NCBI RefSeq assembly: GCF_947568905.1
Contig: NC_079172.1
Span: 18,786,001 to 18,850,000, forward strand
DNA length: 64,000 nucleotides
Direction of reading: 5' to 3'
Origin: Ostrea edulis
Taxonomy: Eukaryota
How positions within the stretch are numbered: position 1 is the first letter of the stretch; each line of letters begins with the position of its first letter. Below, piece by piece: positions 1 through 30,249 of the stretch. A model generated the notes under the pieces. That model searched no databases. It saw only the letters and a program-made list of their open reading frames with translations, and was not told where the DNA came from. The translations under genes were made by a program, and so were the position numbers.

Positions 1-1416
1 GGATCCCAACATTATCTCATAATAAGTGGTATCTCTAGATATTTTATCTCATTTTAAATGAAGTCCACTGTATATTGATTGAGTTGAGAAATCATGTACG
101 TTAAGTTATTGCGTAAAAAAAATATCCGTTCTATAAATATTTGAAGTGCATAGAAATTCTAATGTTATCAGATTTTCATCCCACTCTCAAAGCAATTACT
201 GATAAACACTGTGTTTTTTCAGATTGTTTTCATTGACTTTCCTCTCAATTTACTTATTTCTAAGTATTTTGTTGATTCAGATGTGTTTGTGAATTACTTT
301 TGATTAACATTGATTGGTTAGACATGTTGCAAACTTCATTTTACCTCATGTGGATTCTCTTACATACAGGAAGTCGAGAAGAATTATCTTTTATCTTGAT
401 TTGTTGTTCTGAGGGGATATTTTTTTGCAATAAAAAGAGATGTGAAATAGACATTTTCTGATATAAAATTTTTCTCAACTTTACAATGAAAATGTGAAGA
501 ACAACAGTATAATGGGGAAAATAACAAGTAATTGAAAACTGTTGAAATAAAGTACTACAGTGGAGCTTCGTTAATCTGGACACTTGGGTTCCTTGCAAAT
601 CATCAGTAGGATGGTTAACTGATTGCATGTATCTTCATATATTTGTAATCAATGTGCTTGCTTCTTTGATATGTGATATGAAATACACATTAACAGTTTT
701 CTTTTTTACCATATTTTCCCGAATATGATAAGTAGTTATGTTTAATATGCCCACCCCATCCCATTTTGCGTCTGATACACAGTATTAACAGAAAGAACAA
801 AAATTCTAAAACATATTGTTTGGTTATTAAGATAGCATGTCATTTACATTGAAACATGCATATTCAGTAAAACAAATACATTTTTGATCTGAAATGTTTA
901 TTCTATCACAGCTCAGGTTAATCAACTCATGAAGTATACTGTATATAAATTTCAAGTCTGTGACAAATATATTGCAACAAGTATTTGAAGCACTCTCTGT
1001 ATTATTGTACATTTATTTTAGATAGGACAATTATGACAGTACATAAATTATATAATATACCAAAATGAATAATCATAAAACAATTAAGAGACAAAAATTC
1101 TTAAGGACAAAAAAAAATGGATGTATGGGTTGATATCAATTTTATGGCTTAATTAGTTTGGTTTTAATAAGTACAAAAGTACAAAATTCCTTAAATGCTA
1201 GGGGACTTCATTCTTTTAAATCTTCATTTTTTAAAATTCTATTGTCAAAAGTTATTGAAATCTATAACAAATTTTCCCCACTGTACTTATAGTCATTTAG
1301 AACTCATGGGAATGCATTATATTCCATATGGTAATTTGTATTCATTTTACTCATAACAACATGAATTTAGTTTTCATTTTCTAATAAAGTTTGTTTGCAG
1401 AACTCTTGATTCAAAT

Positions 1417-1510
1417 GATCGCATAGGATGAAACTAAGGAAACCAGTCTCAGTTCCGTCAATAGATCGCATAGGATGAAACTAAGGAAACCAGTCCCAGT
1501 TCTGTCAATA
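1417..1510. repeat. 47-bp tandem duplication (2 copies) just downstream of the receptor stop codon
   Basis: gatcgcataggatgaaactaaggaaaccagtctcagttccgtcaata twice, 2 mismatches. Confidence 0.9.
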
Positions 1511-1618
1511 GTTACTAGTTATAACATCCTATATGTTCTACTGTTTCCAACTGCTGCTGGTCGTAATCCACAGTGCTGATTATCATCGCCTTTCTCCATT
1601 TTGTTTTTATTGCAACAT

Positions 1619-2862
1619 TTAACATGGCGTTTCACACTTATCAATACTGTTGTTGGAGTCTGATCCGTTGTGGTAAAAAGACCCATTACTGACCATCCAG
1701 CTCTGGACTCTCTGTTTCCTCTGAATACGGTCATAGCGACACAACAGTAATTTCTTGAAGGTCATTTTGAAGGTCTTGTTAAACATGGTGTAGATAATTG
1801 GATTCAGGGTACTGGACACATACCCCAACCAGTTGAAGGATGCATACAAAGCTGCTTTAAAATTGCAGTCTTGACAAAGCGGTGTCATGATGTTGAGAAT
1901 GAAGAATGGAGCCCAACACACAACGAAGATGACGAATACAATTCCTATGACTTTAGAAGCCTTCTTCTCAGTGTGAACATCATCTAGCTTCTGAATATGA
2001 GTTTTCTTCATTAGTAATATGCTGGTGGCCTTTAAAACCAGTTGGTGCTTTCTGACAAGTCCTCTGAGGTGATTAGAATGACCATTTGGTATGATTAGTC
2101 GGGACCTTGCCCAAGGTGTGACCTTTCTGGACTTGTCACCAGGGCTTTGGTCAATATTTAAATGGCATGTAGAATCTGACAGTTCTAAATCTTTCACTGG
2201 ATTTTTCCTGGATTGTAAGTGGTTGTCTAATAATGGAGATGATGCACAAATGCCTTTCTGGCTTGAAATTTCTGAAATGTTTTCCATACTTGAATGTAAT
2301 GATTTGGGATTGGATTTTCGATTGATGATTGGTGTATATAGGTGTTCATTGGCATCTTCCTGATGGTGGGTGGCCCGATTTCTTGTCTGAAATCTTACCC
2401 TGGTCCCTCGTTTTATTGGCTTTCTGCTCAAGGAGCGTCTAATAACAGGCTGCTCATTTTCCTTTCCTTGAGCATGGAGTTTGTTTGACTGGCTTATTAA
2501 GGTGTACAGTGTCAATCCATAAGACAAAACCATGATAACTAGTGGAATGAAAAAAGCACAGACAGATCCATAGATTTTGAAATTACCATTGGATAATGCA
2601 CAGTGCTGATTAGAGTAAACATTACCCTCGTTAATGAAACCTAATATGGTTATTGGACTAGATATAGCTAATGAGGTGATCCAAACAATGGCTAGTTTAA
2701 TGATGACAATAGATTTGGAGATGTTTCTAGTTGTCAGCGGTGATCGTATGGCCATGTAACGATCTAGAGATATGGTACAGAGATGCAGTATGGATGCAGT
2801 GCACATTAAAACATCCGCAGTCACATAGAGGTTACAGATGATTGGCCCAAATAACCAGTATC
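1619..2862 (-). CDS. HTR2: 5-HT2-type serotonin receptor, coding exon 2: TM3-TM7, long ICL3, C-tail
   Basis: Acceptor tttttcag| at 2863 gives G|YWLFGPIICNLYVTADVLMCTASILHLCTISLDRY. Motifs: D3.32, DRY, GSVCAFFIPL, EKKASKVIG, CWAPFFILN, WLGYVSSTLNPIIY. 379+1244 nt = 541 codons including stop (540 aa). These motifs are typical of the 5-HT2 subfamily; no A/B/C subtype is assigned. Confidence 0.92.
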
Positions 2863-3085
2863 CTGAAAAACAGATGGAGTATAGTCAATTTAAGATTTAA
2901 ATCATTTGTTCTCAGTTTTTGAGAATGCAGGTATTAAATACTGATTGTTACAACAATTTAAGAAATATTTCTTGTATGATTTTAAAATATATCAAAATGA
3001 CAAGTTGCTGGAGTTCCAGACTGTTGAAACTTTCCGAAGTTTTAGAAGTTTTTCTTGGATTTTTAAACATAGCTCCAGGTTTTAA

Positions 3086-3598
3086 AGGGACTGATTCACG
3101 ATTTTACCCAAAATTTTGTTTTTCACTTTTAATGATCAAAATATACTGTCTAATGTGTTTGAAATATTTCACATGAAAATTAAGGTTATACATCATCACA
3201 GAAGCTCAATTTAGAGAGTTTATTATTTGTTTTGTAAACAAAGATTGCAGTATGCTATTGTGTACGAAATTTTCAAAAGAAATGGATATCGATCAAAGAA
3301 TTATTATATCTTTCATATTTCAAGCATTTTAGAGGTGAAATGTGTCATCTAAAAGTTAAAATTTGTGACTATGTAAAATCACGATGCATTATATTACAAA
3401 ATCAATATTTCACTTGTTTGTTTACATAAAAAGACTCGAGTCTTTGTTTACATAACACATATTTAAGGCTAAAATATTGCTTTCATTTTTGCATTCAGAA
3501 GGTCAAAATTTTGGCTGTCAACATTAAATGAGTTATATTTCTAACGTTTAACATCAAAAATGAAAAATATTTTTATCAAAAATCGTGAACCAGTCCCT
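3086..3598. mobile_element. Non-autonomous DNA transposon, TTAA target, Kolobok-like
   Basis: 20-bp TIR AGGGACTG(A/G)TTCACGATTTT with 1 mismatch; TTAA on both sides (3082-3085, 3599-3602). Confidence 0.8.
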
Positions 3599-3602
3599 TT
3601 AA

Positions 3603-3818
3603 AGGGGCTGTAGCTGTCATTTTGTCACCAAAAATTGAATTCATTGAAAATTGCTTTATATTATATATTTTAGTAATAGTACCTTGCAGTCTTTAATTAT
3701 ATCAGACTTTTTATCCTCAAAGCAGGCACATGAACTTGTAATTTTGGTAATCAAATGATTATATTGTTTTGGGAGGGGGGGGAATGGTTGCCATCACTTA
3801 CACAGCTAATATGCCCCT
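3603..3818. mobile_element. Second TTAA-flanked MITE abutting the first
   Basis: Starts AGGGGCTGTAGCTGT, ends ACAGCTAATATGCCCCT, then TTAA at 3819-3822; TIR degenerate. Confidence 0.5.
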
Positions 3819-6800
3819 TTAATATTTAGCTCTTTAATAAAATTTTCCAATGTGCTTTTTCTTGGAGGGAGTGTAGATATAATCAGCCTATATATTATCA
3901 AAATTAAGCATTGATGAAAACATGGCTACATGAATTAATAGTTCTTTTGTAATCATTTAAACTTGGGACACTCACTAATCTGTTTATTCCATTGAACAGA
4001 TGAAGCCAATAATTGTGGGAAAATTCTATGCAGTGTATAACTGATGCTTATTGCATAGTTGACTGTATGCAGAGATGGATTGATTCCTTGCAAAAATCAT
4101 GTTTTCTCTTGTTTTAATTCATATAGATTTTTGGGGGTGGGGGAGGGAGGTTGATTGGTTCTAGTTTGTGTATTTTATGAAGCATCAAGTTGTCTGACAA
4201 TGAAGAATGAAGTAGCTAATAGCTTGATTAGCTTTTGTTGGGTCTGAGCTTTCATTTTTGTACAAGTGTTTCAATAATTCATCATTTACATATAGCTCAA
4301 TATTTTTGAATTACTACATTGCATCTGCCTTTTATGCTCTAATGAAAGCTTGGTTTAGAAATGATACTTTGTTTAATGGGAGTAATGCACCCATTAAGAG
4401 TTTTATAATATTTCATCAATAAAAACAGAATTGTTAATCCTTGTGCAGAATTCCTATTTAGTTGTTTTTTTCTCTATTAATTGATATTCAAGGCTGTACA
4501 GTTGTTATTCTTCTTTTTTTATTCATATTGGGTGTTATCTGTCGGTCCATTAATTGTGGGCTTTTATTGAAAAAAGATTACAGTTTCTATAGGGCATATC
4601 CTTTTTGGAGTCCAAGGACCTAATGTTTCATTGTCAGACCAAATGTATCTCCTGAATCTTTCTTCTCCTGACAATAAACCTTGGTCAGTCTCTCAGGATG
4701 AGCATTCAGGGAATCTGGTGTTGCGTCATGTTCGATCATTTATTACCATGCTAATTGCAATTACTATGGATTTTCAGTGTTTGTTATGTAGAGGATTCCT
4801 TGGTAAAACTGCATGGCTCAATAGTAAATGACTTTTATAGAGTGTGCATGCATATGCATTCAGGTTAAAAAATAATTTTTAAAAAATGATAGAAATGTTT
4901 TGGTATTATGCAGTCTGCAAATACTTCTATCTTCTTCTTTTTTTTTAATATTATTATTTTTGCAAAAATGCTCAGCCTTTGAATTGTTTTGTGAACTTTG
5001 GTAATATATGTTGAAATCATGTTCCTACATTTGGACAAATCAGGGGAAAAGGTGAATTCAAGTAAGAGCTGTACATGTATGTCATTTGCATGGGTTATAA
5101 ACTCTGTTGGCTCTCTATTAATGTCGTAGCAGGCATTTCATCTCTCGATCTAGAAGGGAGGCTACTCTAACCAGTGTCCTCGGGTCAACAGAATTATAAA
5201 GCTGCCCAGTATAGTATTAGTGTGGATATAAAGATATTACCATCATGTTTTTACTGGATATAATTAACCAATGCTGAACACCCATTCAATAAAACAAATA
5301 AAATGCATGGTTTATAATGCCTGCGCAAGTTCTACTCAAGATAAAAGAATTGACCACCAAGTGAACCCTAAAAAACTTCTTTAAAAAAATTAAACAATTG
5401 GAGGGTATTTGAACAGGACATTTTACAAAAGATAAGCAAATGGCATGGGTTTTTTTTTTTTTAAGGAACTTGAATAAATCTGATCATTTTGGTTTAATTG
5501 ATGAAAGGGGATCATAATCATCGAAGTGTGATATGAAGAAGATTTTCTAAGATATGATGCTGCATGTGATTTTTATACTCCTAAGATGAAAGAGTGTGGC
5601 ATATAATTAACATTAACATTTAATCAAATGTATAACCTTGATCATAACTTTTGAACTATACAATTTGGTGCTTGGTGAACTGAGAGGTCAAGTCCAAGCT
5701 ATATATATGACTGATAAAGTTATATACTGCAACAAGTGTTGTCTCATATGCATTTATGTACTGGAAGATAGGAAAAATTCTGACTTCGAAGTGTCTGAAT
5801 TTTTCAAAGATCATGATTTAGATTTTCTTGGCTATTAATTTAGAAAGATGGAACCTCAGGTAGGCTGGCAGTGCCTAGTGCCTACTACTTTAAATTCATA
5901 ATTAAGCTTTCACAACAGAAATACCAGTAATCAATTTTGTAACTGATGCCCTAATTTCGATATTTTAAAGGATTTCCTACTCCTAGATATAGCACATTAG
6001 TCAAGTAAATATTGACAGAAGCTGACATTTTGCTACTTTCCAGTGTTGCTTGAAATTATCAGATTAATTCAGCAATCAAAATGAAAAGTGAAAAACAAGG
6101 TCAGATGTCAGAATTTCAAGCATTCCATCTGTATGTTCTTGGAGGGGTCCATGTTATTCTTCCCATTGACCAGAATATGTCCATGTAGAAAGTTTTTAGT
6201 GGAGTGAAAATAACAAGAGAAAAGTGGTTTTATAAAGCTGTATCAGTTGCAGGGGGATCAGTCTCTGAATGAAAATATTCAGAATTTCTCTGGAGTCATG
6301 AGGTGTGATATTGTTAATTAACCACATTCCCAAATGGAGCAGCTGAAAATTAAAAGGAGCAGATAAAAATTACAGGGAGCAATCTGTCTGCTAGGCTGGG
6401 AATTCTACTGAGAACTTGAGCATGTTTTATGGGGATTAAAAACGGAGTTAGAGACTTTTCAGATTATTTTTGTTGTCTTGTTACATAGGTGCTGCCAAAA
6501 ATTTATCGAAAGAATTGTATATTCTTCAATTATTTCAACAGCTTTCCAAGCCATTAAGTTTTGTGATAATTAATCTGACTAAAGAGAAAAACACGAACTG
6601 CCAAGTGATTTCATTAGTGGCATCACCTCATTCAGTTTTCTGTTCCGATCTCCATTGAAATGTTTTAGTAATTGTTCTCCTCAGTGAGTTAATTCTAAAA
6701 GATAATTGTGATATATTCAATTATATCATTCATGTAATTATAAAATCCGACAACGAAATAAATGTGCAATATAGCATTCATGGAATACATCTGCTGAGTG

Positions 6801-8737
6801 ACTCTGCAGTAAATGCTATTTGTGCTGAAAAATTTTGGTCATTGAAGGCAATCCATTTCATGCGTCATTGATAATGACATCTTGCTATATATTAATGTGT
6901 ATATTCGTCTTGATGAGAGTCTCTCTTGAGTTCCAACAGATTACTAGAACAAAGGACTTGTAGGCTTAATAGTTCCATATTGTTCTGCCTTTATGGATTT
7001 GGAGATTTGGAGCATGTTTTTGGTGTCCATGAATGCTTTTTTAATTTGGGTCGAGAAGGAGGGGGGCTTAATTGGTATATCATTTAATTGCATACACAAA
7101 TTCAATAAAGAATAATGAATAAATGTCAATTTTGGGTCAAGTTCACAGTGCCAGAAGTAATGAATGTATTGATCAGACACATTCATTTGAATTGCAGCAA
7201 CCAAAGCTAATGATATGATTAATATGATTAAACATTGTCCCAATGTGGAAAAAAAAAACCATTGTCAGTTTGACCAATTTGGATGTAAAGGTTTGTTCAC
7301 TGCACCTGGGAAGCTGAATTGAAAGTTGTACATAATGAATGCTTTACCATTCATCAATAAATATGTGTTATTTAGAAGCTCATATCCACATTGACTTCAA
7401 AGAGCTGGAAAACTTATTTCTTCCCCTAGTGAGCCTGCTGGGCATCAGTAATAAAAGAACTCAATTTAGATTTATCTCTCTTTATCAATCCTCTATCACC
7501 CTTCCACTCTTTTTAAATCAAATTTCAACAAGGTCATTTTCATTTATTGGCAAGCCAAATGAACACTTTTTTGCTTTTACTCATAGGAGAAGGTGATTTT
7601 TGATGCCTCCAGCTCATAATCAGTTTATGTCCCTACCAATACACCTGGACAGTATCAATGGCAATGAATGAATGCTGATCAATATTGCATCTATATATAT
7701 ATATATATATATATTTATTATTTCATATTGATACTGCAGCCTGTTAGATATTAATCCTATATGGGTTGATACACTGGTAGTAACAGGATTATTGCAGGGG
7801 GGAAGGGGGGGGGATCTGTCTCTTTGGGCATTTATAAAGTACAAATTGAGATGTTATTAGGGCTCTCAGCGGCTTAATATGAAAGGAATTAATTTTTTAT
7901 ATCAAAGTAATATTAACCCATATAAAATAATTCTCTTCTACACGAGATTCTGGAATGCAAGCTTTTAAAAGTTTTGACAAATGTAAATTGTCTGTAAGTA
8001 GTTAGATATTAAAGATATATTATCAGCGTTTGATACAAATAGCAGTAGGCAATGGTAAGTATAATTTGTGGTATTTGGAATTGATGAAAACAAAATCAGC
8101 ATACTGCAACTGACGTTTCAACACTTTGCATCCTAAATCCTAATATTTGTAACAGTGTAGGTGCTGGGGGAAGGATTTTTTGATCTGTAATGTACAAGAT
8201 AAGTGGCTTCAAAAAGTGTGAAAAAAAATGTATGCAGTGGATGAGAAAATTGGTTAATTTGCTACCACCATCAGATACTTGCAGTGAAGAGGTATTTTTA
8301 ACGACCATGATTTAGATGAATTAAGATATATATATACATGACACGTTTATCGCAAAAAAGCATGCATTTATAGAAACAGAAATGGTGTTTCTAGAAACAA
8401 TTTCACCCTGGAATTTTTGTTATCTCCGTTATTTAAAAGTGGTTGCTAGTTAATGAGTCGGTGTCTTGATGGGATCTCATTTAATCAGACATGCTGTTTA
8501 TATTAATTATTGTATGCAGTTAAAAAGATAGCTGAAAAAAAAATGTTTTCTGTTTGATGGGAGAAAATCATACTAAAATTATGCAATTCACAGAAAATAT
8601 CAAAAATTGTTAATCTTAATGTGTAAATTCAGTATAAGATCAATTACAGTTACGGTTTCATTGAAATTTAGTGACCATCTTCCATCCATGGCTTTGCTAT
8701 AATATAAAATTGCATTGCCTTTTAATAATGAAAAGAT

Positions 8738-9085
8738 GAAGATAATGAATAGTGGTCAATCTCATAACTCCTATAAGGAGTTGGGCAAACATGGACCCCT
8801 GGACATACCAGAGGTGGCATCAGGTGCCTAGAATGAGTAAGCATCCCCTGACAACTGATCACATCTGCTGACTTCTCACACCCACCATGAGCCCTACATC
8901 TTGATCAGGTAAATGGAGTAATCCATAGTCAAAATCAGTGTGTAAAAAACGGCCTAACAATTGGTATGAAACACATTGGACAGCATTTAACCCAATGACA
9001 GGTTGTATTTGCAAACTAGATCACTATAATGACCGTAGAAGTGGCAAAATGCTGACTTTAAATGAGACTGTTGAAACCCCTATGA
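8738..9085 (-). mobile_element. 3' end of a Penelope-like retroelement (ORF C-terminus, 3' UTR, tail unit)
   Basis: Reverse complement of 42256-42600; ends in the ataggagttatgagattga... tail motif. Confidence 0.65.
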
Positions 9086-10230
9086 ACATGCTGCTAATGT
9101 TCATATTTTCTTTTTAAATTAAAAAACTATTTTATTTATCACTTAATTTCTAGGTCTTTCTAAACCAGAAAAAGCAACAGAAATTGGTGAATAATGATGA
9201 AGATTTGTTGTGGTAGAAAGTATTTTTAGTGGAAAATAATTTCCTAAAAACTGGAATTCTTGTTAAATCCTTGTTAGAATTTTTTGTGGTCATGGAAACA
9301 ACATTATCAGACAGGGATTAATTCACTGGATGTTGGGATGGGAGCATTTCTCTGTTGGCTTTCCCTGGTTGTCTGTGTACTTGAAGGGGAAGTAGGGATT
9401 TGAAAATGCTGAAAGGGCCTAATTGGGCAGATGCCTGATGTTCCATTTGAAGTCTGTCTGGTGTGATGACAAGATCTCAGCTGATAATTGCTTCACCACC
9501 TGTAGGATCATAATGCATTGAACGTTCTGTACATTTTTGCAAAGATGCCATTGTGCAAGTCTGAATTGCGGGATTAATATTCATAGATTTATTTTTGCTA
9601 TGAAATGAAATATAATGATAAAAGTTATTTCAGGGCTTGAATTTTGTAGGTGTTAGAGAACCTGCCTTTCTGAAGTACAGCAGCTACTTCATGCTCTATA
9701 CCATGATAAAGATAACTTTATCAAAATGAAGAAATCGGGAGGGGGGGGTGCATATAGTAACTTATAACTGGTTCACTTTGGTAGCATACAACCTGAGTTT
9801 AGCTATCATTTTCAGTATGAGATATGACTAGTCTGTTTTCTGTTAATCTCCACAGTGGCAGACACTAACTAAATGTTGAAAAGCAAATGGTAATGAAAGA
9901 AAAACAATGGAATTGCCCATGCAATCTCTTTTAGTATCTTCTTTAAACAAGTCACTAAGTTGAAACTGTCTGCAAAGTTGATTAAGCTTATTAACTTGTT
10001 CTTTGAGCATACCTGACAACTAAATAATTGTTTGGAAGAAAGGGAAGCATTTGGGGATTTATTTTAAAAGGTTATGTCTGTTTAATCTCTGAGAGATAGT
10101 AATATCCTGTTGTGAGTTAATTGTTTGTTTATTATTAATTCATTATTATTCCCTTTGGGTCTGACTGATTTTGATCAAAGTTAGCTCGGAGAGTTTGTTT
10201 TAGTGACAATTTTGGGCATTGGTTTCTTAC

Positions 10231-10609
10231 CTGTGAAATCATTCACAACTGTGAATGGCATTACTATGATGCAGACCAGGAGGTCAGTAATGGCAAGAGA
10301 CAGCAGAAAATAATTTGTTACACTTTGTAAACGTTTCTCCATAGAAATGGCCATACACACTAAAATATTCCCACCCACTCCAAAAAATATCAGAGGGGTC
10401 AGGAGAAGTATTGGCCAATTATATCCCTGATGTCCATCTTCAATGGTAAGAATATCTGTGCAGTTGACTGATCCATTGAATTCTCCTTGGTTAAATGGAC
10501 ACCCCTTTGTCCTAAGACTGACACTGCTATTTTCCAGCACAAACATTCCATTGGTTAATCCACTGGAAGATGTAATGTTATCATAGGTGTTCACATTTCC
10601 AATCGGCAT
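10231..10609 (-). CDS. HTR2: 5-HT2-type serotonin receptor (class A GPCR), coding exon 1: N-terminus, TM1, TM2
   Basis: ORF MPIGN...GNILVCMAISMEKRLQSVTNYFLLSLAITDLLVCIIVMPF has the GN (TM1) and LAxxD (TM2) motifs and several N-glycosylation sequons. Donor ACAG|GTAAGA at 10230, phase 1. Confidence 0.9.
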
Positions 10610-12824
10610 TTAAAAGAATTTGGTCCCTTTGGAATTTTAAACAATGGTTTGTACTGTAGATTATTGAACCAAAATTACGTTTTATCTTTTCACATGGTAA
10701 AGGCACTTAGAGCAAACCTTGAACTTATATTCCATTGTTAGGAATTTTCCTTGTATAATCATGCATTTTCAACCAATCTGTCTATATTCCAGTCGAAAAA
10801 TAATGCAGCCAAATTTCCTCACATTCAAGGATGATCTAAGCTTCCAACAGAATTTTACCTGCAGAGGAAAAATTAATATGTATGAATTAACCTATACATT
10901 AAAGAAACAAGTTTTTAGGGAAGAAAAGCTGCAATAAATATGTTACCAATTTGACATTTGCAACATATTATTGATTTGGAAATACTTCTCACCATGGGGA
11001 TGATAGATTTATTATGTTAAAATAATAAGCATGCTCTACTTTTATTTTGAACAATTTCTTAATTTTCATTCACATTTTCCATGAATCAAAGGGCTCTGTT
11101 CTGCTTGGAAAGCTAATTAGACTAATAAAGAGACACTAATTAATCATAGTGTATCAGAAATAATGCCTGTGTCCAAGGGCAGATACTTTAACATTAAGCT
11201 TTTTTTTTAAAAGTTGTTTATTGTGTTGCAATTACATTGCACTTTAGAGTAATAATAAACTCATTCCTGAAAAAAAATAGAAAAATAACAAATATGAATT
11301 TATTTTAATTGCTCTGATTCAAGTTTTAAGCAGCTTCCACATTTCTTTGTAATTACAAACTATTAAGATAATTTTTTACCTGATTGATGCAGAAACTTTC
11401 AAGCTGCAGACTAATATCCAGCTGCAGTCCTCGAATCACTAGCACTTACTGGTCCACACAGTAGTGCTGGTAGCTACACACAAGTAAAATCTATCCCATC
11501 AATGCCTTCTACCTGGGATACAGCTGATCAGCATCTGATTAATCCCGTACATACAGAGGAAACAAATTCAAGTGGGGGCTATATCATCTGATTTTGAAAG
11601 TACCTTTTTTTTCCTCTTCTGAGATGATTGTATTGATCAATGGATTAATAAGATTTACACCCGCTTGAAAGTTTGTGGTTGTACACATGTATCGGGCACC
11701 TTGTATATATTTGATAACTGCTACAAAGGCATATCTCTCTGTCGGAAGGAGAAGTATTCAGAAATTTCTTTATATGTTCTTACCACCAATGTATCTTTGC
11801 AATGCAGTTAAATTATCCCACATGGAAATACAATAGTGATACTCTTTTTGAATATCCTTAAATTGTCTTTTAAAAAATGCCAACACATATTATCCTTGGC
11901 AAAATAAGTATATGGAAAGTCCATTATTCATTACAAGAATTTGTGATCCTTGGTGAGAAGAATTTTCCTTTTTATCTAAAGCATCCATTTGGTAGTTTCG
12001 ATTGTGTGTGGAATTCTATCCTTCAAACACCTGATTTTAAAAATACCATCAATCCAGGATGCTCCTTTGAATTAGAATCAGATAAGTGATAAAGTTCCAG
12101 TCTTGTAGTGTGAGGCAGAAGAAGCAGCCCCTATCTGTCGTGTTCTGTAGAGGCTCTCCAACCACTGATAACTTTATATATTGTTGATATCAATTGTTAC
12201 ATCTATACTTCACCTGATGTACTTGTATTGTCAGACTTTGCACAGTGGAATCAGAAGGGAACCAATACCTGTCATTGTCTGCAATCTGCATTATATCAAT
12301 CAATGTTTGTGATTTGAGTTACTAGTTTTTGATTGAATGTTAATTGGCTGCCTAAAACCAAACTACTCCTTGTTCCAAGCATTAATGCATGCACAATATG
12401 GGACATGCATGTTTGCCCATCTTTCATCTTTCTTTGCATTAGCATGTGTTCTGCATGGTCACAGTTTAAGAAACCTTCAAGCACATGATGCACATACAGC
12501 TTGGTGAGCATGTTGAAATTGGATGAACCTGACATTCTTTCTTTCTGACATTAAATCCACATTTCTTAATTCACATTTAGCAAATTTTGTTGATCTCCAC
12601 GGATATGCTATCATCTAATTACATACACAGACAACTTGAAACTATTAATAGTGATACAGTATTATGCAATTCATGGCCTTGGGTTAGGGAATGGGACATT
12701 ATGATTCATACATTTCTATGAAATTTTTCTAGAAGAGTTGTAGACACCAAACAGCTGAACTGAATTTAAGTGATATTGTGAAACTCGTGCTCCTGGGTCT
12801 CTTTTATGGGAGTAAAAAATTTCT

Positions 12825-13525: not shown

Positions 13526-15962
13526 TAGGGTTGTCAAATTGATCAAAAATTAGTAACCGGTTACTCGGTTGTCTTTCTGATCGCGTACTCGGTCGTCATT
13601 CAAGAGAACATTCAAATCTTAAACATAGTTGATTCTACTTAATAACACAGTCTATATCCATCATCCTGCTGTTTATGTATTCGTAATTTCGGGATCTCGA
13701 TCCGGACATTAAATAAGAGTACAAAGAAAAAAAATAATTTTTTTAATGAATAGAAATGTACATGATTATAAAAATAAACATTCAGTTTTTATTTAGTCCA
13801 GCTTTAATTTGGTAGCATTATAAGTATTAAACGTATATACATTTACGAATTTGTATGTTCGTCATCTTAGAGCTCTTTTAAACTAGTTTTTATTCAAGAA
13901 AATTATTTGATCTATACATGAGGAAGATAGCCTGCTTCGAAGTTTTGTAACAATTAGACTGGCAGATGAAAAAATGCGCTCGGATGGTACAGATGTTGCT
14001 GGGATCGCTAAGTATCGGCGAGCTAATACAGCAAGTCGCGGATACTTTGCCGAGTTCTCCTGCCACCAGTTTAATGGATCTTCCATTTCTGAACAATTGC
14101 GCAAGTAAGAGGAAATTTCACAATCGTCATGTCGTTTGTCTAAAGGCGCTTCAATGAGAAAGTCAAGCATCTACTGAGCTTTTGGCTTTGGCGGCGACGA
14201 ATCTCGTGGAGTATTCAAAGCTGGTTTTAAGGGAACTTCCTCAAGTTCAACTTCCAGAGTTTCGGTTGCTAATTTACGCTGCGTCTTAGATAGAAACAGA
14301 AGATGTTTATGTCTTGGGTCCAGAAGGGAGGAAAGGATCGGAGAGGTTGATGCAGTTGCATCATTGTCAGGTTTGAACCATGAACGAACGCAGTTCATTA
14401 GCAATAGAATGTTTGACTTTTGCTATAACACAAAGTATCGTCATCAGATATTGTGAGATGGTTTTTCAGGAGGCCGCAAACAATTGGATAAATTACAGAG
14501 GTCAAAACAACACTATCGGATGACATATAAGTAGTGACCTTTGTAACTTTCCCCAGCACATCGGAAAGTGATAAGGAATCATTCGTTGTCCTTAAGCAGC
14601 ATATAAACGTCTGCTTTCTTTGTTACGGAATTGTCAAGCATAACATCAGTAATGATGCGGCGTTGTTCTACTAACCTTTCTTTCATAAGTTGAGTAGAGT
14701 TCCATCGCGTGACAACATCTTGAATAAGATCCAATATTTTTTGACGTTTTCGCAACTCTGCGTTGATTGTTGTTGAATGCTTAAAGTGTCCAACAAGCTT
14801 GCGCGCACGCGATATGAGTTTGGAGACTGTTGGTATTTGCAGTGCGGGTTTAATGCAGAGTTGAAGTGTATGTCCGAAACAGTAACCGTCCGTCCACTTT
14901 GGGCATAAATTCCCTGCACATGTCATATTTCTTGCATTGTCATGTACGACATCGGTCACTTTACTATTTAGACTGAATTCAGCAACGACTTGTTTTAACT
15001 TTTCAGCGATATTTTCTCCCGTATGTCTCTCCGGCATCTCGCGAGTGACAAGTACATTTGATGTTAGCTTCCAGTCATGGTCAATGTGGTGTTCAGTTAC
15101 TGTCTTGTAAGTTTTTGTTGCATGTGATGTCCATGTATCTGTTGTTAGGGAGACAGTATCAACTTTATCAAGTTCCGATTGCAAAGTAGCCTTCCGTTCG
15201 TCGTAGGTCTTTTCAATTCTTGCCTTAATCGTGTTTCTGGAGGGTTTTATAGTTAGGCAACACGGTCGACATTAGCCTCTGAAATCCCTTCCCTTCGACT
15301 ATTCGCAGCGGCATATAATCCAGAACAACCATGTCAACAATTGCCTATGTTATGTCTTCCGATTGTTTGCCTGATAGATTTCTTGTACGCGGAGAATTTA
15401 GAAAATTAACCACAGACGGTTGTTTCTCTGGAGTTCCTTCAATATCACCATGTTTTATGCGCAAATGATTCAGCAAATTTGTTGTACCTCCCGTGAACGT
15501 TAATTCAACCTCGCAGAGTTGACATTTTATAGATTTTGAATCGCCGGTCCATTTAAAATATTTCCATACTTTAGAGGACGGAGGCATTTTTACTACTAAC
15601 AATTGTACGAGTCCACGCTTTTTTTAATTGAATTAATTTGAACTGTATTTAAGTTGAATTCAAATCATGGTATGCCCCTGGCTATAAACAAAGCGATGTG
15701 CTGCCACCGACAGAGGTGCTAATAATTGTTGTCAAAACAGGACAGGCCTTTAATTCAGGCTACATGTATACATTGTAGGTAATTGAGAGAACAGTACTTG
15801 AGATAACGTACGATGATCTGCGAAAATAGAATGAGTGAAACAAAACAAAAAATACAAGAAATAAACAATTTTTTTTTTCAAGTACTCGGTTACTGATTTT
15901 AGTAATCGATACTCGGACCTTCCGACGAGACTCGAGTAACGGGTTACTCGTTGACAACCCTA
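13526..15962 (-). mobile_element. Full-length hAT DNA transposon (ZBED1-like), 2437 bp
   Basis: Perfect 12-bp TIR TAGGGTTGTCAA; perfect 8-bp TSD GTATTAAT (13518-13525, 15963-15970); subterminal GTAACC(C/G)GTTACTCG motifs. Confidence 0.95.
13883..15587 (-). pseudogene. Disrupted hAT transposase
   Basis: BED finger (WKYF...CQLC...NLLNHLRIKH), LTTDTWTS, HDNARNM, CFGHTLQL, DVVTRWNST, LLDPRHK and the hATC dimerisation domain (WW...YPRLAVLARRYLAIPATSVPSERIFS). In-frame TAG at 15345, TGA at 14579 and several frameshifts. Confidence 0.92.
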
Positions 15963-16364: not shown

Positions 16365-16396
<32 letters not shown>

Positions 16397-16430
16397 TAAG
16401 CTTTCCACAGATCATAGAACTATTTTGATA

Positions 16431-17342
16431 TTTTTATGCCCCCCTTCAAAGAAGAGAGGCATTTAGGTTTGCACCTGTCGGTCGGTCTGTAGATCACATG
16501 TTGTCCGCTGAATATCTTAAGAACCATTCACTTGATATTTCATATGTAGGTTGTTATGTTTTTGGGGTCCAAAGGTCAAGGGTCACACTGGACATAGGAA
16601 TATTTAATATCTTGAGAACCCTTTGCTTGACAGATATTAAACATGGTACACTGGTACATCTTCAGGAGAAAATGACCCCTATTGATCTTGAGATCACTTG
16701 GTCAAAGGTCAAGGGTCATGCAGTCTGGACATAGGAATATACTGTCCTCTCAATATCTTTAGAACCCTTGAATTGACAGACATCAAACTTGGTACACTGG
16801 TACATCTTCAGGAGAAGATGACCCCTATTGATTTTGAGTTCACATGGTCAAAGGTCAAGGGTCACACTGGACATAGGAATATACTGTCCGCTCAATATCT
16901 TGAAAACCCTTTGCTAATGACAAACATCAAACTTGGTACACTGGTACATCTTCAGGAGAAAATGACCCCTATTGATCTTGAGATCACATGGTCAAAGGTC
17001 AAGGGTCAAACTGGATATAGGAATATACTGTCTGCTCAATATCTTGAGAACCCTTTGCTTGACAGACATCAGATTTGGTACACTGGTACATCTTCAGGAG
17101 TACCATATAGTTCGACTATATACAGGACCCCTATATATTGATTTTGAGGTCACATGGTCAAAGGTCAATGGTTAAACTGGACATAGTAATATATTGTCTC
17201 CTATAATTTAAGAATTTTTTGCTTGATTGACACCAAACTTGGTACAATGGTAAAGCATAAGAAGCAGATCGCAGGCCCCTATTGATTTTAGATCACTTTG
17301 TCAATCCACTCCTGACATAGGCAGATACTGTCTGCTCAATAT
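16431..17342 (+). mobile_element. Helentron-like non-autonomous element (HINE/pearl type) with ~142-146 bp tandem core
   Basis: Head ttttatgccccccttcaaagaagag, then a GTCG microsatellite, then about 5 core units containing ggtcaaaggtcaagggtca. Same family at 32001 and 43127. Confidence 0.7.
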
Positions 17343-17348
17343 ATCAAA

Positions 17349-18142
17349 TAGAATTAATATTTATTTAACTGGCGGCCGCCACTTAATTTATGTGGCAGCC
17401 GCCACTTATTATCTGGGGGCCGCCATATGCATTAACTGGCGGCCGCCACTTAATTTATATATGGCGGCTGCCAATTACAAAAACAGTGTAATTCGTATCG
17501 CTGAGTGATTATTTTGGAAAGATTTAGAATAGTACGCAAACACGCAGCATCGTTTTTCAAAGTGCATAGGGACAGTCGGAGGAGAAATTGTCTTCTACAA
17601 TTGTTGACAAGCAGAAAAGGAACCTAAAATGTCTCTTTTGTCCAAACTTCATACTCCTAAATTGGAGGGAGGGGGCTCCGTTCATCCTTCAATTGATCAG
17701 TTCATTCATTATTACATTTTTACCATTCATTACTACCACCAAAAGAGTGGGGTTGGGGCCAATCTGCCAATTAATCTTATTTCACATGTGAAAATAATTT
17801 AGTTTGCATGTGAAAATAATAGAAATTGAACATTGTCAAAAAAATGGAGGGTCAGCCCCGAGGTTCTACGTATTTAACAGCACAATCGAAAAACAATAAT
17901 TTAATGCTCTGAATTGTGTATATATATATATATATATATATATCACATACATATTACTAAGCTTTGGGGAGGGATTGCACCCCTTTCGTTTTGAGAGAGA
18001 GAGATAGAGAAAGAGAGAGGAATTGAATAACTGGTGACAGCCATATAAATGATTCAAATTGAGTGGCGGCCACCATATAAATTAAGTGGCGGCCGCCAGA
18101 TAAATTAAGTGGCGGCCGCGAGTTAATTAAATATTAATTCTA
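17349..18142. mobile_element. MITE with long TIRs built from NotI-containing subrepeats
   Basis: TAGAATTAATATTTA...AACT(G/C)GCGGCCGCCACTTAATTTA inverted at both ends, 3-4 subrepeats per arm; possible TA TSD. Confidence 0.8.
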
Positions 18143-20805
18143 TACCCTGGCACCTATCTGCTTCCGTAGTATAGTCCAATTTGTATATGTGTGATTTATG
18201 TAGAAACAATGCTACAATGATTATTATAAACTGAAAGAAAAAAAATTTGATCAGTTTATTTAAGTTATTATTGTCAAAATCATTCTACATACTTCTCAAT
18301 CTAGCGAATACAATTTATTATCAAAGAATTATTAGTTCTACACCGAGAGTTTGTTTTCAAAATGATTCAGGCACGATCTGACATCATGCACAGTTATATA
18401 GTACTACATGTTACCTGTAAAAGCAAAGGATGGACTTGCTGCTAATTGTAGAGACATGAATGAGGACAAATATTGACGTCACTTGTTTTTATTGCAGGGA
18501 CAGACAGAAATAGATAATTGAAAAATCTAGTCATAAAGTAAATAGGGTCACTTTGAAGTGTACCTTGTATAGACTCCCATGTATCTGCATCGTATTGTTT
18601 AAACCCAGTGTCTTCAAATTAGTAAAGCTTCTTAGTGTAAATAATGCAAAAGAACTCAATAATTTAGGAAAGTTCCTACAACAGGCTAATAATTTATGAA
18701 TTTTGTACTTGCAACAACATATTATTCAAGTGTATTGTTATGTGTATGTTGAAATGCATTGATTTTATGTCCTCAAAATTGTATCTGTATGTCTACTCAC
18801 CCTCTACTGTCTTATTTGTATATATTTGTAAATATTTTGTATTTATGACCGATGTAGTTTAAGAAAATAAAGAGTCTGAATAGTTTAATATGTATACATT
18901 TCGTTGGTATGGGGTCTTACAGTATGACCAGAGAAAACCCAAATGAATTTTGAAGTCTTTGTCTCAAGTCTGAATGCTGATTTAAGTTTTATTTGTCCTA
19001 TTATAGATTAAATTTCATTATGTTTTCGATGGATAAAAGTACGTTAGTACTTTCTTAGAACTATGTGATATATGCTCACGTAGGTATCCCACGATTTTCC
19101 CTATCTGTTCATCAGATCTTATTTCCTCCATAGAATGGAGCACAGAACTTCATTATGCATATAAAATCAAAGGCACAGTTTAGTGCAATATCAGCTGACG
19201 TCAGGGGTTGCCCAGAGTTACCTGGACAGAATCTTTATTGTGACAACATACAAGGCTGGTTTATGGGGAGTACAAGAGGGGATGTTGAAAGGAAGAATAG
19301 CAATTATCAATTAAGGGAGAAACAAGCAGGGTTATTAATCAATTAATTATCTCACTGAAATAAGGTTGACAAGTTTATAGTGACTTTTTAAAAAATGTAA
19401 GGAATAGAAGCTTTAGATGACATCGAGTTTTTATCAGTGTATGGACATCAACTCCACTAAATCAGCAAACACGGATTTACCCCATGACTTAGACATTTTC
19501 AGTAGACAATATATTCATCCAATTTCTGATTTTAAAAAAAACCATAAACAGTATTTTGTGATGAGGCAACAAATGAAAGGAAATACTGAAACAAATTAAA
19601 ATTTTCTTATTCAACATTAGAATTTAAGTTCATTTATTTTCAAATCCACATCCATCCATGGAGCAAATGAGATTAGACATAATTTCTCTGATATTTATAA
19701 AGTTAAATTATATTTGTTATTAGGATTTTATTTACACCAAGAAATAAAGTTTTACATTGATCGTATTTTTTTTAATTGGAGATGACTTTATATTTTATTG
19801 AGAAGAGAAAGAAATCCATGATTTATTCACCAAAGTTAATTCTAATAAAAGCAAAAAACAGGGCATGTACTCTTTGTGTTTGTCACCAAATTCAGCTGTG
19901 GAATTAAAAAAATTTTATTTAAAATACTGGCACATCCTCCAAAGAGACAAAGACGTTTTTTTCTGATATATCTATTGTGTCATACGAAATGCAATAAAAA
20001 TTTAGGGGATATACTCTAATCATCAATTATAAAAATAATCAAAATGCATGATAAAGTTTGTAAAGTGAAGACTCCTGATGAGGTGGATTTGCATGCAGCT
20101 GAAATTCTATCTATTTGTCAATTATTTTAATATCATAAGCTGACGTATATCACACTGTTGAAACACTGAATGCCCTGCCACGATGCGGCAATGTCTGAGT
20201 CAATGTGGCTGATGGGGGCCTTTATTATTTTCTTACTAGTAATAATATGAAAAGATCAATTTAATTCTTATTAAAGATATTACAATGCCTATCACAATAC
20301 AGTTAAAAATATTGCAATACGAAATTTCCTGAAAATACCCAGCCTATAGTTTTTGACGTCATAAGAGACCACAATCTGATCTGTGAAGCAAAACAAAAGC
20401 AAGTCAGTAGATGATTTATTTTGCATCTGGAGGAGTTTTTGGATGAGGGTCCGAAGTTTTTTGTACAAGGATATCACTTTGAATTCATAATTTATTAATG
20501 CAGATGTCGGCCACATCGATGATTTTTCATTGGAGGGCAAACAAGAAGATCGATCAAGATCCTATTCATTCTGAGTGGGACGTTAAACAGTATACAACCG
20601 ACCAACCATTTTTATGCAAAACAAACTTTTTTTGAAAATCGTCTCCTATGACCTATGTAGTTTTTGGGCATCAAATGTTTGTCATTTGATGTTTTACAAG
20701 TTTCACCAATAAACTGTTTTTAATATCATTCAAATATTGGAAGGATCAGCCTATAGTATATATTACACAAACTGGAAAGAAATTGAAATTTACATATTCA
20801 TATCT

Positions 20806-21105
20806 CAACAGTCTGTTGCAATTCCCATGGGCACGAATTGTGCTCCTTTGTTAACTGACCTGTTTTTATATTTTTAGGAAGCAGAATTTATTCAAAAACT
20901 TTTACATGAGAAGAAAAAATCTCTTGCTGTGGCCTTCAATGTGACATTTAGATATATCGACATTTTAACTATTAACAACACCTGCATATGGTGTTTATAT
21001 CTCTCAACTGATTCGATACGCAAGAGCTTGTTCTGCATATGATCAGTTTTTAAATCGAGGCAGGCTACTGATAAACAAGTTGATGGGTGCAGGGGTTTCA
21101 ACAAC
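20806..21105 (+). pseudogene. Penelope-like reverse transcriptase remnant, internally deleted
   Basis: Translates as QQSVAIPMGTNCAPLLTDLFLYF*EAEFIQKLL...FRYID and YGVYISQLIRYARACSAYDQFLNRGRLLINKLM, which are PLE RT motifs. Confidence 0.8.
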
Positions 21106-22991
21106 TATGTAAAATATTTTGGCTTTAAAAGAGAATAAAAATATAATTTGCTGATTCTGTAAGGTATAGTGTTTGCATAAGTAACAAAGAAGCTGATTAT
21201 GCCAAATATTCAGATTATTTTGATAGATAAGTTGTGTATAGATATATCATATGTAACACAATTAAATACTTTAAATTATACATGTATTCAATTACAAGGA
21301 AGAAAATTCACATTTCCATGTTTTATCCTTCTGTGAGTAATTCTTTAGGTGCCATTAACTATATAATTGTATCAGTAGTTAAGTCTCCCAAACAAAGTTT
21401 TGAGACTTATTTATTTCATTCTTGTAGTGATAACAAAAAATTGATTTATTATAGGGTTGTTAAAAGCTTGGAAAATTCTGTTTTTGCACTTATAAAACAT
21501 TCTATCTAAGAAAACAAATGATGTTGTTTTCATTTCAAATCTGTTTGATTTTGTATTCAATGATAATTCTGATCACTTGAATTCACAATAATATTACAAC
21601 AGGATGGGATAGTAACAATGAACCATTTTGTCGATTCCTGAACATTCAGATAAACAAGACGCAATTTCCTTGTGACATAAAGCAGACTTACAGAGTTTCA
21701 GCCAGGGGAAGGTGCTGAATAATTTGCTTAACAAGTCATAAAATATTTGTTTTGCAAGCATCCTAGCTAGCATACCAGACTGAAGCAGGATTAAAAGTTT
21801 CACGATAGTTTGCCAGTATCTCTAGTGATGGAAGAAAATACCACAACAAATATCTGAGTAGTTGATGTCCATCCTGATAAAACTGTTCATGATATTTCAC
21901 AGGAAATATTGAAACCCTTTCTTTATTGAGTCTGTATTTGTGCTGGGTGTTTCTGGTGCTGCTCTTTTGTTTCTATGGTTATTTAACAGTTTCTGGATAG
22001 AACTGAAAGAGACTCTCAAGATTGTCAGAAAGTCAAATAGCATGCCAACATTAAATGAATCAAAACAAGCATCTGTCTTCTCTGTGGCCTAACATGATCC
22101 CAGTCTTTATAATGAGAGTCTCTGATCGAAAAAGGCCTCATTAGGAATGTCTGCTGTAGAATTAAGAGCCATCTATTTAAGGTGTGGGGCTTTTTTTGTT
22201 ATTATATGCCCATCTTTAGACAGGACTATTGTGGTACAGCAATGTCTGTACATATATACGTCCATTTGTTCAGGGTTTTCTGTTTCAAATTTCATTTCTC
22301 TGTCACATATATCAAACTGAAGCTTGCTATGTAGCTTCTCTGTTGGTCACTCTAGATCATGTTGCAATTTTGATCCATTTTTACTTCTCTTGCAGGGGTT
22401 TTTCCCCTTTATTTGAAAAAAATAATGTAATATGGAGGGTACATATTAATTTGTCCCGCGAACTCCTCCCACAATTTTCTAGTGAAGACCTTCTTGTTTT
22501 ACAGGGTGTTTGTATGAGTATTAAAGATGTGCATGTGGCAAGGATTTTGATTTTCTTCAATTTTTGAGATAATTACAGGTTGTTGAACTTCGTCTGTTTT
22601 GAGGAAATACTATATTAAAGAAAGGACATGATTCCTCTCACAGTTTTGAAGCTAAGGGCCTTTGCAAATAAATTGAAGATGTGCATAGTGCTTAGGATTT
22701 TGTATTAATTTTTTTTAATGTTTAAAATTTTTGGGAAATGTTTTTACACACAGAACTCTTGGTTTGTCTATATATCTACCTCCTTTCAAGTTTTTAAGCT
22801 AGGACCTTTTATTCAAAGAAAGTATGTCAAAGCGTGACTGTACTACCTGAAGCAAAGTTCCACAAATCATGGCTGAAGAAAAACACTTAGCTTTTCACAG
22901 GCATATTTAAATATGTGCCATTTTTAGTAACTCTTGTTGATTTATTTTCATTTTTGAAAAATATAATGAAGATTTACTAACCAATTGCAAT

Positions 22992-23040
22992 ACTAGTTTT
23001 GTGATCTAACCGCTGAGCTAACTAGGCGGCTGATACATGT
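22992..23040 (-). repeat. tRNA-like (A-box) head of a dispersed repeat
   Basis: Minus strand reads gccgcctagtTAGCTCAGCGGTTAGA; no complete cloverleaf. Confidence 0.35.
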
Positions 23041-23549
23041 AAAATATAGTAACATTACTACAATATAGAATTTAAATCAATGCAATCTGATTAAAATCAG
23101 ATCCTTTGATCTGCTCACGTAGATAGCTACACAAGGATCTGAAATAATCCTCTTTGGGTGACGTCTACATGACCTTTTGTTTAATGATTGCGCCATACAG
23201 AAAATGACGTCAACAAGTTACAGTAATCTCTCTCCCACGAAGTTCAACTGTATGTGCTCGCATAAGGATTTTCTAAACTTTCACAATAATGCCTAATTTA
23301 TTTGGTTCAAACAAACAACAAATCGTACAAAATAAAATGCATCCAAATTTAATAAAATGTCAATTACAATAAAATACAACCAAATTTGATAAAATGTCAA
23401 TTATGATAAAATGCAACCAAATTTGATAAATTGTCAATTATGATTCATGTATGAATAGTGATGGGTATGATTTGAATAGTTGTCAAGATGGTGTTTGGAA
23501 AATCTCTTCCTTACCAATTATTGATACCAATGAAGAAAATAATATTTTA

Positions 23550-24235
23550 GCTAATTTGAACTAGAAGCTCTTTTGATCACCTATTGTCCATCATGTCTCT
23601 CTGTCCGTCTGTCTGTAAACTTTTCACGTTTTGGATTTCTTCTCCAGAAACATTGGACTTATTTCAATCAAACTTGGCAGAGAGCATCCTTGAGAGAATG
23701 GCTTTAAAGTCTATTCAAATGAAGGACCATGACATTGAAAAGGGAGATAATCACCAAAATGCAAAATTAGCATGGGGTCCTTTAAAAATCTTCTTGTCAA
23801 GAACCATTAGGCCAGAAGAGCTGAAATTTACATGAAAGCTTCCTGACATAGTGCAGTTTCAAGATTGATAAAATCATGGCTCCCGGGGGTAGGATGAGGC
23901 CACAATAGGGGATCAAATTTTTACATGCGAATTTATATGGAAAATCTTACTCTTCTTAAGAACCACTGGGCCAGAAGATCTTAAATTTTCATGAATGCTT
24001 CCTGACATAGTAAAGATTCAAGTTTGTTAAAATCATGACATGGAGGGTAGGATGGGGCCACAATAGGGGATCAAGGTTATACATGTGAATATATATAAGA
24101 AAGATCTTTTAAAAATCTTCTCAAGAACCATTGGGCCAAAGAAGGATGCATTTACATGAAAGCTTACTGACACAGTGCAGATTAAAGTTTGTGAACGTTC
24201 ACAGTCTTCAAGGGTAGGGTGGGGCCACAATAATG
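23550..24235 (+). mobile_element. Helentron-like element with ~165-170 bp HindIII-site satellite core (oyster Cg170/HindIII-like)
   Basis: About 3 units of aaaatcttc...agaaccactgggccagaa...catgaaagcttcctgacatagtgcag...ggggccacaataggggatcaa after a CTGT microsatellite. Related pieces at 16340-16400, 35878, 37100, 38930-39230 (reverse), 50865-51160 and 56290. Confidence 0.65.
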
Positions 24236-25596
24236 GTGATTTTTACATCTTTTTGGTATTTTTAAAAACTGTTATTGTTGTTACTTTCACGAATGTCACT
24301 GGCTCTATAGGCCCTTGAGACTACTGGAGTCCCAAATTTTCAAAATTCATTTCGCGCTAATCCAACAAGGCAACATCAAGAAAATAATGTCTTATGAAAT
24401 ATACATGATTTACAGTAACTTATTTGATTTTTTGAAATGACATGGATATTCTAAACATTGAGGGAGTACTTATTTTGAAAATTTTGATCACTTAGTGGCC
24501 TGAGGCTATGTTATATCCGCAGAAACCAGATTTGAACAAAGCTAAGTTAATGTCCGGTAGGAAGTCATTTTGTGTGTAGAACAGTGAACTTACTATTAAT
24601 ATAGTGTATAGGCTGCATTACATAATCTGTTGTTGTATTTTGTTTTCAGAGGGACTAATGTCCATATCTTAATTGCATTGAATTTTTTATCAATAATGGT
24701 CCATCAACAAGGAAATCAATGACCTTTGTGCCATTAGGACTATATTCATGCTTGTTGACGGTACATGAAATGGCTGCTCTCTTGTGAGCTTGATGGTGAT
24801 TTGGGTACCAACCTAAACAGATTATTGTCAAATTATTTAAAGCTGGAACAAACAAATTAAATAAACAAGAGCAATATCCTTACATATTTGCTCAATTTGT
24901 GTAGAAAAGACCTTAGAATGATCATAAACGGAACACAAACCAAAGCAATAAAACATTTCCTCTGTCACACAATTGAATGCCAGGAAAATGCTGTGGAATT
25001 ATGGATTAAGCGATACTTTCCAGTTTGGTTTTGATGTGAAATTGATAGTGTATTTACAAGGTTTACATGAATGATGTAAACTAAAGTACTGTAAATCACT
25101 GAATATTATTTCCTTTGTTTTTATGCCCAGAAGATATTAATTGGGTTTGTCTCTCTCTTTGCATGTCCACAACTTTAACTTTGGTCATAACTTTTGAATT
25201 ACATATAATGTAAGGCAGGGTCCTCATACAGTGGTGAATTGAAAGGTCAAGGTTAATGCTAATTGACTGCTGTAGTTTGGGGTCATCAAGGTCAAATTTG
25301 ACACAATTGAACATAGCCATGCTTATTTTGGTATGGACTGACAAATTCAAATCCTGCATGAACAGAAGAAAGAATGAGAACTGTGTAACTATGGAATCAA
25401 GACAATTTGAACAATTTTTTTCTCAAAGTGTGTTACTTTAACTCCACAAAAATAATTGATCTTCCAATATGATTTATGTACATGTATGTGGGAATAATTC
25501 TAAAATGCATCTTTTCATAAAACTTGCTGTTTTGGATGTATATCCAACAGTTTGTGGTTCCTATGCCACCAATATAATCTCTCTTTTTTTTTTCAG

Positions 25597-29782: not shown

Positions 29783-29813
<31 letters not shown>

Positions 29814-30217: not shown

Positions 30218-30249
<32 letters not shown>

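Follow-up and report, generated by a model that had tools for sequence, protein, structure and literature searches.

A 5-HT2-family receptor gene antisense within a PSMD1 intron of oysters and vertebrates: a nested gene pair of probable bilaterian ancestry

A stretch of 64,000 nucleotides of the Ostrea edulis genome (contig NC_079172.1, positions 18,786,001 to 18,850,000; hereafter the window) carries a serotonin receptor gene of the 5-HT2 family on the minus strand and the 3' part of the proteasome gene PSMD1 (Rpn2) on the plus strand. The receptor gene appears to lie antisense in the PSMD1 intron that splits the codon for Arg628 (R628, human numbering) after its second base, the same intron that harbours HTR2B in vertebrates. 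It seems quite likely that the two genes form an ancestral bilaterian nested pair, a 5-HT2-family gene antisense in the phase-2 intron at R628, and that this pair has been kept mainly by entrapment of the receptor gene in its host. As judged from the molluscan and vertebrate sequences, the arrangement was most probably already present in the common ancestor of protostomes and deuterostomes.

The receptor gene occupies the minus strand between positions 1 and 10609. It is complete and consists of two coding exons, in agreement with an earlier model-generated annotation of the window (the sequence-only reading), which had placed a complete 5-HT2 gene at 1619-10609. Two open reading frames (ORFs), 10181-10609 and 1619-2824, carry a Pfam 7tm_1 domain (E 7e-15 and 4e-42, respectively). 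Coding exon 1 (10231-10609) starts with the ATG at 10609, encodes the N-terminus and the transmembrane segments TM1-TM2, and ends with the first base of a Gly codon (phase 1) at a donor, ACAG/GTAAGA, that was read from the sequence where the ORF departs from the frame (here and below, a slash marks the splice junction). A phase-1 intron of 7.4 kb (2863-10230) separates it from coding exon 2 (1619-2862), which follows an acceptor read 5' of the second ORF (...TTTCAG, then GA TAC TGG) and encodes TM3-TM7, a long third intracellular loop and the C-tail, with the stop codon at 1619-1621. The spliced coding sequence (CDS) specifies 540 amino acids (aa) and has a single terminal stop. Its closest relatives are oyster proteins of 542 aa named "5-hydroxytryptamine receptor 2C-like", with 87% identity in Crassostrea angulata and Magallana gigas and 83% in Saccostrea; exon 1 on its own is 73% identical to exon 1 of M. 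gigas. A second receptor copy was found neither within the window nor within 10 kb of the M. gigas receptor.

The first PSMD1 exon of the window (25597-25711, plus strand) begins in the middle of the protein, at R/TPEQCP. It takes up the last base of an Arg codon and then 38 complete codons (TPEQCP...GTGLK), and it matches residues 629-666 of human PSMD1 (E 4e-21). Its borders, read from the sequence, are the acceptor ...TTTTTTCAG/A ACC CCT GAG and the donor AAG/GTAAAT. The intron in front of it is of phase 2 and splits the Arg that corresponds to human R628. The 3' part of this host intron fills positions 1-25596 (at least 25.6 kb), with the acceptor AG at 25595-25596. The start of the exon at R/TPEQCP after a phase-2 intron had been noted before by the sequence-only reading, together with the lack of any preceding PSMD1 exon in 1-25596, and the latter also withstood two further searches. 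In a permissive tblastn search of the window with full-length query (word size 2, E up to 10), PSMD1 residues 1-631 gave nothing but noise (E > 0.5), and a fuzzy six-frame search of the entire window for the preceding-exon motifs ...SDVNDDVRRAAV... and ...LGFILFR was equally blank.

The lack of any PSMD1 residue before 629 in the window would also be expected if the upstream exons were located elsewhere, due to a misassembly or to a split or trans-spliced gene, in which case the receptor would not be nested in this genome at all. Such a situation is hardly to be expected. The exon at 25597 begins in the middle of a codon with a canonical acceptor and hence needs an upstream exon. Furthermore, in the confamilial M. 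gigas the receptor (P0013) lies wholly within an annotated gene of the opposite strand, on a 51-Mb chromosome record, whose 979-aa PSMD1 product carries RPN2_N, PC_rep and RPN2_C. Of the PSMD1 exons, none but the TPEQCP exon comes within 10 kb of that receptor, 9.6 kb away from its 5' end; the window has the same layout, with 15 kb between the receptor 5' end and the TPEQCP exon. From this orthologous locus in the same family, we infer that the receptor is nested in PSMD1 in O. edulis as well.

For the comparison with other animals, PSMD1 proteins of many phyla (950-970-aa forms) were gathered with a 556-aa piece of Nematostella PSMD1 as query, and their loci were then compared. In both vertebrates for which the host intron was mapped, PSMD1 on the plus strand contains a 7tm_1 gene on the minus strand. 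In the spotted gar (PSMD1 locus 2001-54044), the nested gene encodes 498 aa, extends from 17744 to 29924 and lies in a host intron of about 26 kb; in the pigeon (locus 1001-68156), it encodes 463 aa, extends from 27822 to 36282 and lies in a host intron of about 28.6 kb. The gar exon upstream of the intron ends with ...IGFIMF followed by AG/GTACAG, and the next exon opens at the junction TTGCAG/G ACT CCA, so that codon R628 is split after base 2. The pigeon intron splits the same codon after the same base. Both junctions thus read AG/GT...AG/G ACT at R628, which is the codon and the phase of the oyster intron. The last exon of the nested gar gene finds its best match in human HTR2B, with 246 bits, while 2A reaches 162 and 2C 151. 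In human, too, HTR2B lies within an intron of PSMD1, as stated in the preprint bioRxiv 10.64898/2026.10.21.760840.

The sequence-only reading had stated that human HTR2B lies in PSMD1 intron 16, at R628 and in phase 2. The nesting and the position stand, the former by the citation above and the latter by the maps of gar and pigeon, which place the intron exactly as in the oyster. The number of the intron could not be confirmed: in pigeon PSMD1, residues 21-628 are spread over 14 coding exons and residues 1-20 over another one or two, which makes the host intron number 15 or 16. The vertebrate and the oyster pairs therefore have in common the host gene, the intron (R628, phase 2, just before TPEQCP) and the antisense orientation. 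Wherever the intron was mapped (oysters, gar and pigeon), the 5' end of the receptor gene faces the downstream PSMD1 exon. In addition, vertebrate HTR2B and the oyster receptor belong to an orthologous family with a common phase-1 intron past TM2.

This receptor intron, between TM2 and TM3, occupies an identical codon position in all four genes compared (oyster, Lingula, gar HTR2B and pigeon HTR2B). In each of the four species it is located 8 residues past the "MP" of TM2 and cuts the codon after base 1. On the other hand, vertebrate HTR2B has an extra coding intron in TM4, which the oyster gene lacks, and the oyster protein is no nearer to 2B than to 2A or 2C in a ranking against PDB. In that ranking, human 5-HT2C, 2A and 2B make up the whole of the top 26 distinct sequences (197-164 bits), with a modest margin, as D2 comes next at 164 bits and 5-HT1B at 150. 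The translations show G-S-x-x-A in TM5, ASKV-GIVF in TM6 and GYVSS...NP..YT.FNKTF in TM7. The TM5 motif agrees with that of 5-HT2 receptors, and the catecholamine serine triad is lacking. The assignment to a receptor family is based on the PDB ranking, the common intron and these motifs, because the receptor tree took in no aminergic outgroups. Taken together, they indicate that the gene in the window is a 5-HT2-family serotonin receptor gene, with serotonin as its predicted ligand and a predicted coupling to Gq. A search of ESM Atlas features returned generic aminergic clusters of G protein-coupled receptors alone, without separating the subfamily. A D2-like dopamine receptor, as the protein is named in some sources, was considered and rejected, since the order of the PDB matches, the motifs of TM5, TM6 and TM7 and the common intron all speak against it.

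The tree itself is a quick maximum-likelihood tree of 31 receptors rooted on two vertebrate HTR2B sequences. It places Lingula outside the molluscs and recovers cephalopods, gastropods and bivalves each as a group with good support (Shimodaira-Hasegawa-like approximate likelihood ratio test, SH-aLRT, 91-100). As it does not settle the branching order among these three, the tree is not in conflict with the species tree. One duplication is seen within the bivalves. The 5-HT2-1 and 5-HT2-3 receptors of Sinonovacula and the 5-HT2 receptors of Elysia and Plakobranchus belong to the same orthogroup as the oyster receptor (40-55% identity). Unlike these molluscan receptors with their 5-HT2 names, the M. 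gigas orthologue is labelled "D(2) dopamine receptor" in some sources.

Outside the oysters and vertebrates, the nesting probably survives in abalone and in Lingula. In the brachiopod Lingula anatina, a receptor named 5-HT2C is found inside a gene of the opposite strand whose product has PC_rep and RPN2_C, which adds another case of antisense nesting. In the abalone Haliotis rubra, PSMD1 spans 296 kb, and a 7tm_1 gene that encodes 742 aa lies within it in antisense orientation.

An independent origin of these pairs is very unlikely, because the receptor family, the host gene, the codon and phase of the intron and the antisense orientation are common to chordates and molluscs. It could be imagined that 5-HT2 genes entered the same PSMD1 intron separately in vertebrates and in spiralians, since the nest is absent from the sampled ecdysozoans, annelid and cephalopod and the deuterostome sample consists of vertebrates. 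We regard such a convergence as scarcely credible. It would have to account for the same family, codon, phase and antisense orientation in two phyla, and for the antisense orientation in Lingula, where the intron is unmapped. The receptors are orthologous, according to their common intron and the tree, and separate insertions of a multi-exon gene into one and the same of about 20 introns are very improbable. By far the simplest reading is that the nesting predates the split of protostomes and deuterostomes, as the sequence-only reading had proposed; it is supported by the nesting in oysters, abalone and Lingula and by the phase-1 intron that the receptor genes have in common.

The nest is not universal. 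That reading had suggested a search in other animal groups, and next to abalone and Lingula, where the nesting was found, there are five species in which it was not. In Daphnia magna, PSMD1 measures 4.2 kb and has the same phase-2 intron (AG/GTACGT...AAG/A AAT), which is about 300 bp long and empty. In the tick Ixodes persulcatus, the same intron is about 55 bp long, in a PSMD1 gene of 78 kb without a called nested gene. In Capitella teleta, PSMD1 residues 494-956 are encoded in a single exon (L005 8357-9808), against about 10 exons for this region in other animals, and in Nematostella the PSMD1 exon (L003 10948-11184) is continuous across the R/TPEQCP site, with neither an intron nor a nested gene. 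No hidden, unannotated receptor was detected in the PSMD1 loci of the tick, Daphnia, Capitella and Nematostella by tblastn with the oyster receptor as query. The Octopus bimaculoides member of the orthogroup, as defined by the receptor tree, is located outside any called gene, and no PSMD1 exon was found within 10 kb of it. The nest has thus been lost repeatedly, and at least four of the sampled lineages (Daphnia, Ixodes, Capitella and Octopus) are without it.

Since arthropods still have the intron, without a gene inside, it goes back at least to the ancestor of protostomes and deuterostomes; either it arose on the bilaterian stem, or Nematostella has lost it. In Capitella, a 3'-biased intron loss has erased the intron that hosts the receptor in other animals, and the intronless 3' half of the gene fits a cDNA-mediated mechanism. 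A 911-aa PSMD1 without any introns was also met on a 2-Mb ENA contig, ctg6727l (L008 2001-4736). It is either a processed copy or the gene of an intron-poor eukaryote, and is uninformative on nesting.

Why the pair has been kept is a separate question. Selection might have maintained a cis-regulatory coupling, in which the 5-HT2 gene depends for its correct expression on enhancers, chromatin state or transcriptional interference in the PSMD1 intron, either as a genomic regulatory block with PSMD1 as the bystander or as a true link between proteasome and serotonin. We give this explanation, in all its variants, a minor share of the probability. In its favour, the host intron measures at least 25 kb in every species that keeps the receptor, and between the two oyster genera there are five short, collinear non-coding blocks with about the identity of the coding regions. 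Three of these blocks lie within the receptor intron, at 6491-6589 (80% over 100 bp), 7434-7535 (80% over 106 bp) and, near exon 1, 9886-9950 (78% over 67 bp). The fourth, 12026-12090 (80% over 65 bp), is located 1.4 kb upstream of the receptor ATG and could be a 5' untranslated region (UTR) exon or a promoter element; the fifth, 24814-24857 (87% over 45 bp), is found 0.75 kb upstream of the PSMD1 acceptor. They may be UTR or regulatory elements of the receptor gene. Elsewhere, the intron gives no collinear alignment between O. edulis and M. gigas. Window positions 23780-24121 match M. gigas L001:28692-29034 out of that order, at the opposite end of the locus, and are probably a dispersed repeat of both oysters, not a conserved element.

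The bystander model has, moreover, been established for many ancient gene pairs (Irimia et al. 2012, Genome Res, PMC3514665). Against a coupling speaks the lack of non-coding conservation in the host intron at greater depth: in blastn comparisons of gar with pigeon and of the oyster with Lingula or gar, only the receptor exons align. By blastn, the conserved non-coding elements of the intron, for which the sequence-only reading had suggested a search, are confined to the five blocks, at the level of the oyster family. The nesting is also missing from at least four sampled lineages. The fly 5-HT2A and 5-HT2B genes and vertebrate HTR2A and HTR2C work outside PSMD1, which illustrates that insect and vertebrate 5-HT2 genes can function without this host. 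In view of the repeated losses and of the lack of deep conservation in the intron, the regulatory constraint between proteasome and serotonin signalling that the sequence-only reading had deduced from the nesting is not supported.

Passive entrapment explains the data at least as well as a regulatory link, and it is favoured over coupling because of the losses in Daphnia, Ixodes, Capitella and Octopus and because of the missing non-coding conservation at depth. The pair would have been inherited from the protostome-deuterostome ancestor and kept in vertebrates, as HTR2B, and in oysters, and probably in abalone and Lingula. As PSMD1 is a single-copy and essential gene, any inversion or translocation that breaks the chromosome within the host intron would destroy the host gene and be lethal. 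The regulatory DNA of the receptor gene itself probably fills the host intron too. The pair would part only through loss of the receptor gene or its copying to another place; the intron may then shrink, as seems to have happened in Daphnia and the tick, or vanish, as in Capitella. Entrapment would in this way be the main reason for retention, and no functional connection that specifically ties the proteasome to serotonin signalling is needed. A bystander-type contribution, by receptor enhancers that fill the intron, is possible. It could also be speculated that the constitutive transcription of PSMD1, or its chromatin, tunes or gates the expression of the 5-HT2 gene, and that selection has held the pair together for more than 500 million years in those lineages where it survives; this seems improbable to us.

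A number of points weigh against an ancestral pair that has been kept by entrapment. The upstream PSMD1 exons (residues 1-628) lie beyond the window, so that the nesting in O. edulis itself is taken from M. gigas. In Lingula, the 10 kb to the left and to the right of the receptor contain no PSMD1 exon, which leaves its host intron, and the place of the receptor in it, unmapped; in Haliotis rubra, the nesting is seen in a gene model alone, with a protein flagged as low quality and a host intron that has not been located. The deuterostomes were sampled as vertebrates (gar and pigeon by mapping, human by citation), with no non-vertebrate deuterostome among them. Short or diverged enhancers would be overlooked by blastn, and the five blocks of the oysters permit some regulatory content, though their conservation is at the family level only. 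Finally, entrapment is a proposed mechanism.

Downstream of the host intron, the window contains the 3' third of PSMD1 as a series of eight collinear plus-strand exons, of which the first starts at 25597 and the last reaches the stop codon near 57160. They were located by tblastn with full-length PSMD1 proteins and cover beetle, clam and abalone PSMD1 from about residue 629 to the C-terminal end, with the PC repeats and the RPN2_C tail in the same order as in known PSMD1. The exon at 25597-25711 is followed by exons at 35287-35430, 37659-37766, 43928-44104, 51602-51781, 53492-53644 (a Lys/Glu-rich region) and 56837-56911, all six with approximate limits, namely those of the tblastn high-scoring segment pairs. 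The last coding exon (57088-57162) ends with ...PEPFEWTED and the stop codon.

The introns contain various repetitive elements. A decayed transposase of the hAT family is found on the minus strand of the host intron (13883-15602), where the local guanine plus cytosine content is raised to 0.40. It consists of four ORF fragments: a zf-BED domain (15345-15602), DUF659 (14579-15184), a piece without assigned domain (14171-14404) and the hAT dimerisation domain (13883-14170). Tandem repeats of one family, built from units of about 142-144 bp (83-89% matches), are present in the intron that hosts the receptor (16570-17100) and at two places in downstream PSMD1 introns (32144-32684 and 43333-43572); they give rise to spurious ORFs in which the motif ...KEKMTPIDFE..WSKVKGHTGHRNILS... 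recurs. Just past the exon at 43928-44104, a PSMD1 intron holds a 41-bp satellite (44632-46178) with 38 copies, 92% matches and a higher-order period of 488 bp. Further tandem arrays are located in PSMD1 introns and downstream of PSMD1, at 29408-30904 (periods of 150/435 bp), 31368-31691 (63 bp), 33060-33375 (31/85 bp), 55822-56114 (33 bp) and 63406-64000 (43 bp), the last of which continues beyond the end of the window.

The gene within a gene has been kept so closely that the same codon is split in molluscs and in vertebrates, and HTR2B retains the context from before the duplication of the vertebrate receptors. The view that HTR2B holds the ancestral 5-HT2 locus is correct in so far as HTR2B is the only one of the three paralogues of vertebrates that still lies in the ancestral host; in any wider sense it does not stand. 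The nesting provides a marker of positional orthology for 5-HT2 receptors across phyla, where the names in databases conflict (5-HT2C-like versus D2 dopamine). The lineages that keep and those that lose the nest represent a natural experiment on regulation versus trapping in essential hosts.

The nesting in human is already known, and with hundreds of deeply conserved gene pairs on record, findings of this type are not new. No report of this nesting as conserved in invertebrates was found in a literature search that extended to publications other than the lists of several hundred microsyntenic pairs. Such ancestral microsyntenic pairs and the genomic regulatory blocks in which they take part are the subject of Irimia et al. 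(2012), and they offer a close parallel. Like PSMD1 and its receptor, they combine a tissue-specific gene with a housekeeping "bystander" that has long introns, and they have been kept together across distant phyla. There are two differences. The receptor nested in PSMD1 is not a transcription factor, and the hallmark of these blocks is the presence of conserved non-coding elements in the bystander intron, of which none was found at depth in the PSMD1 intron by blastn.

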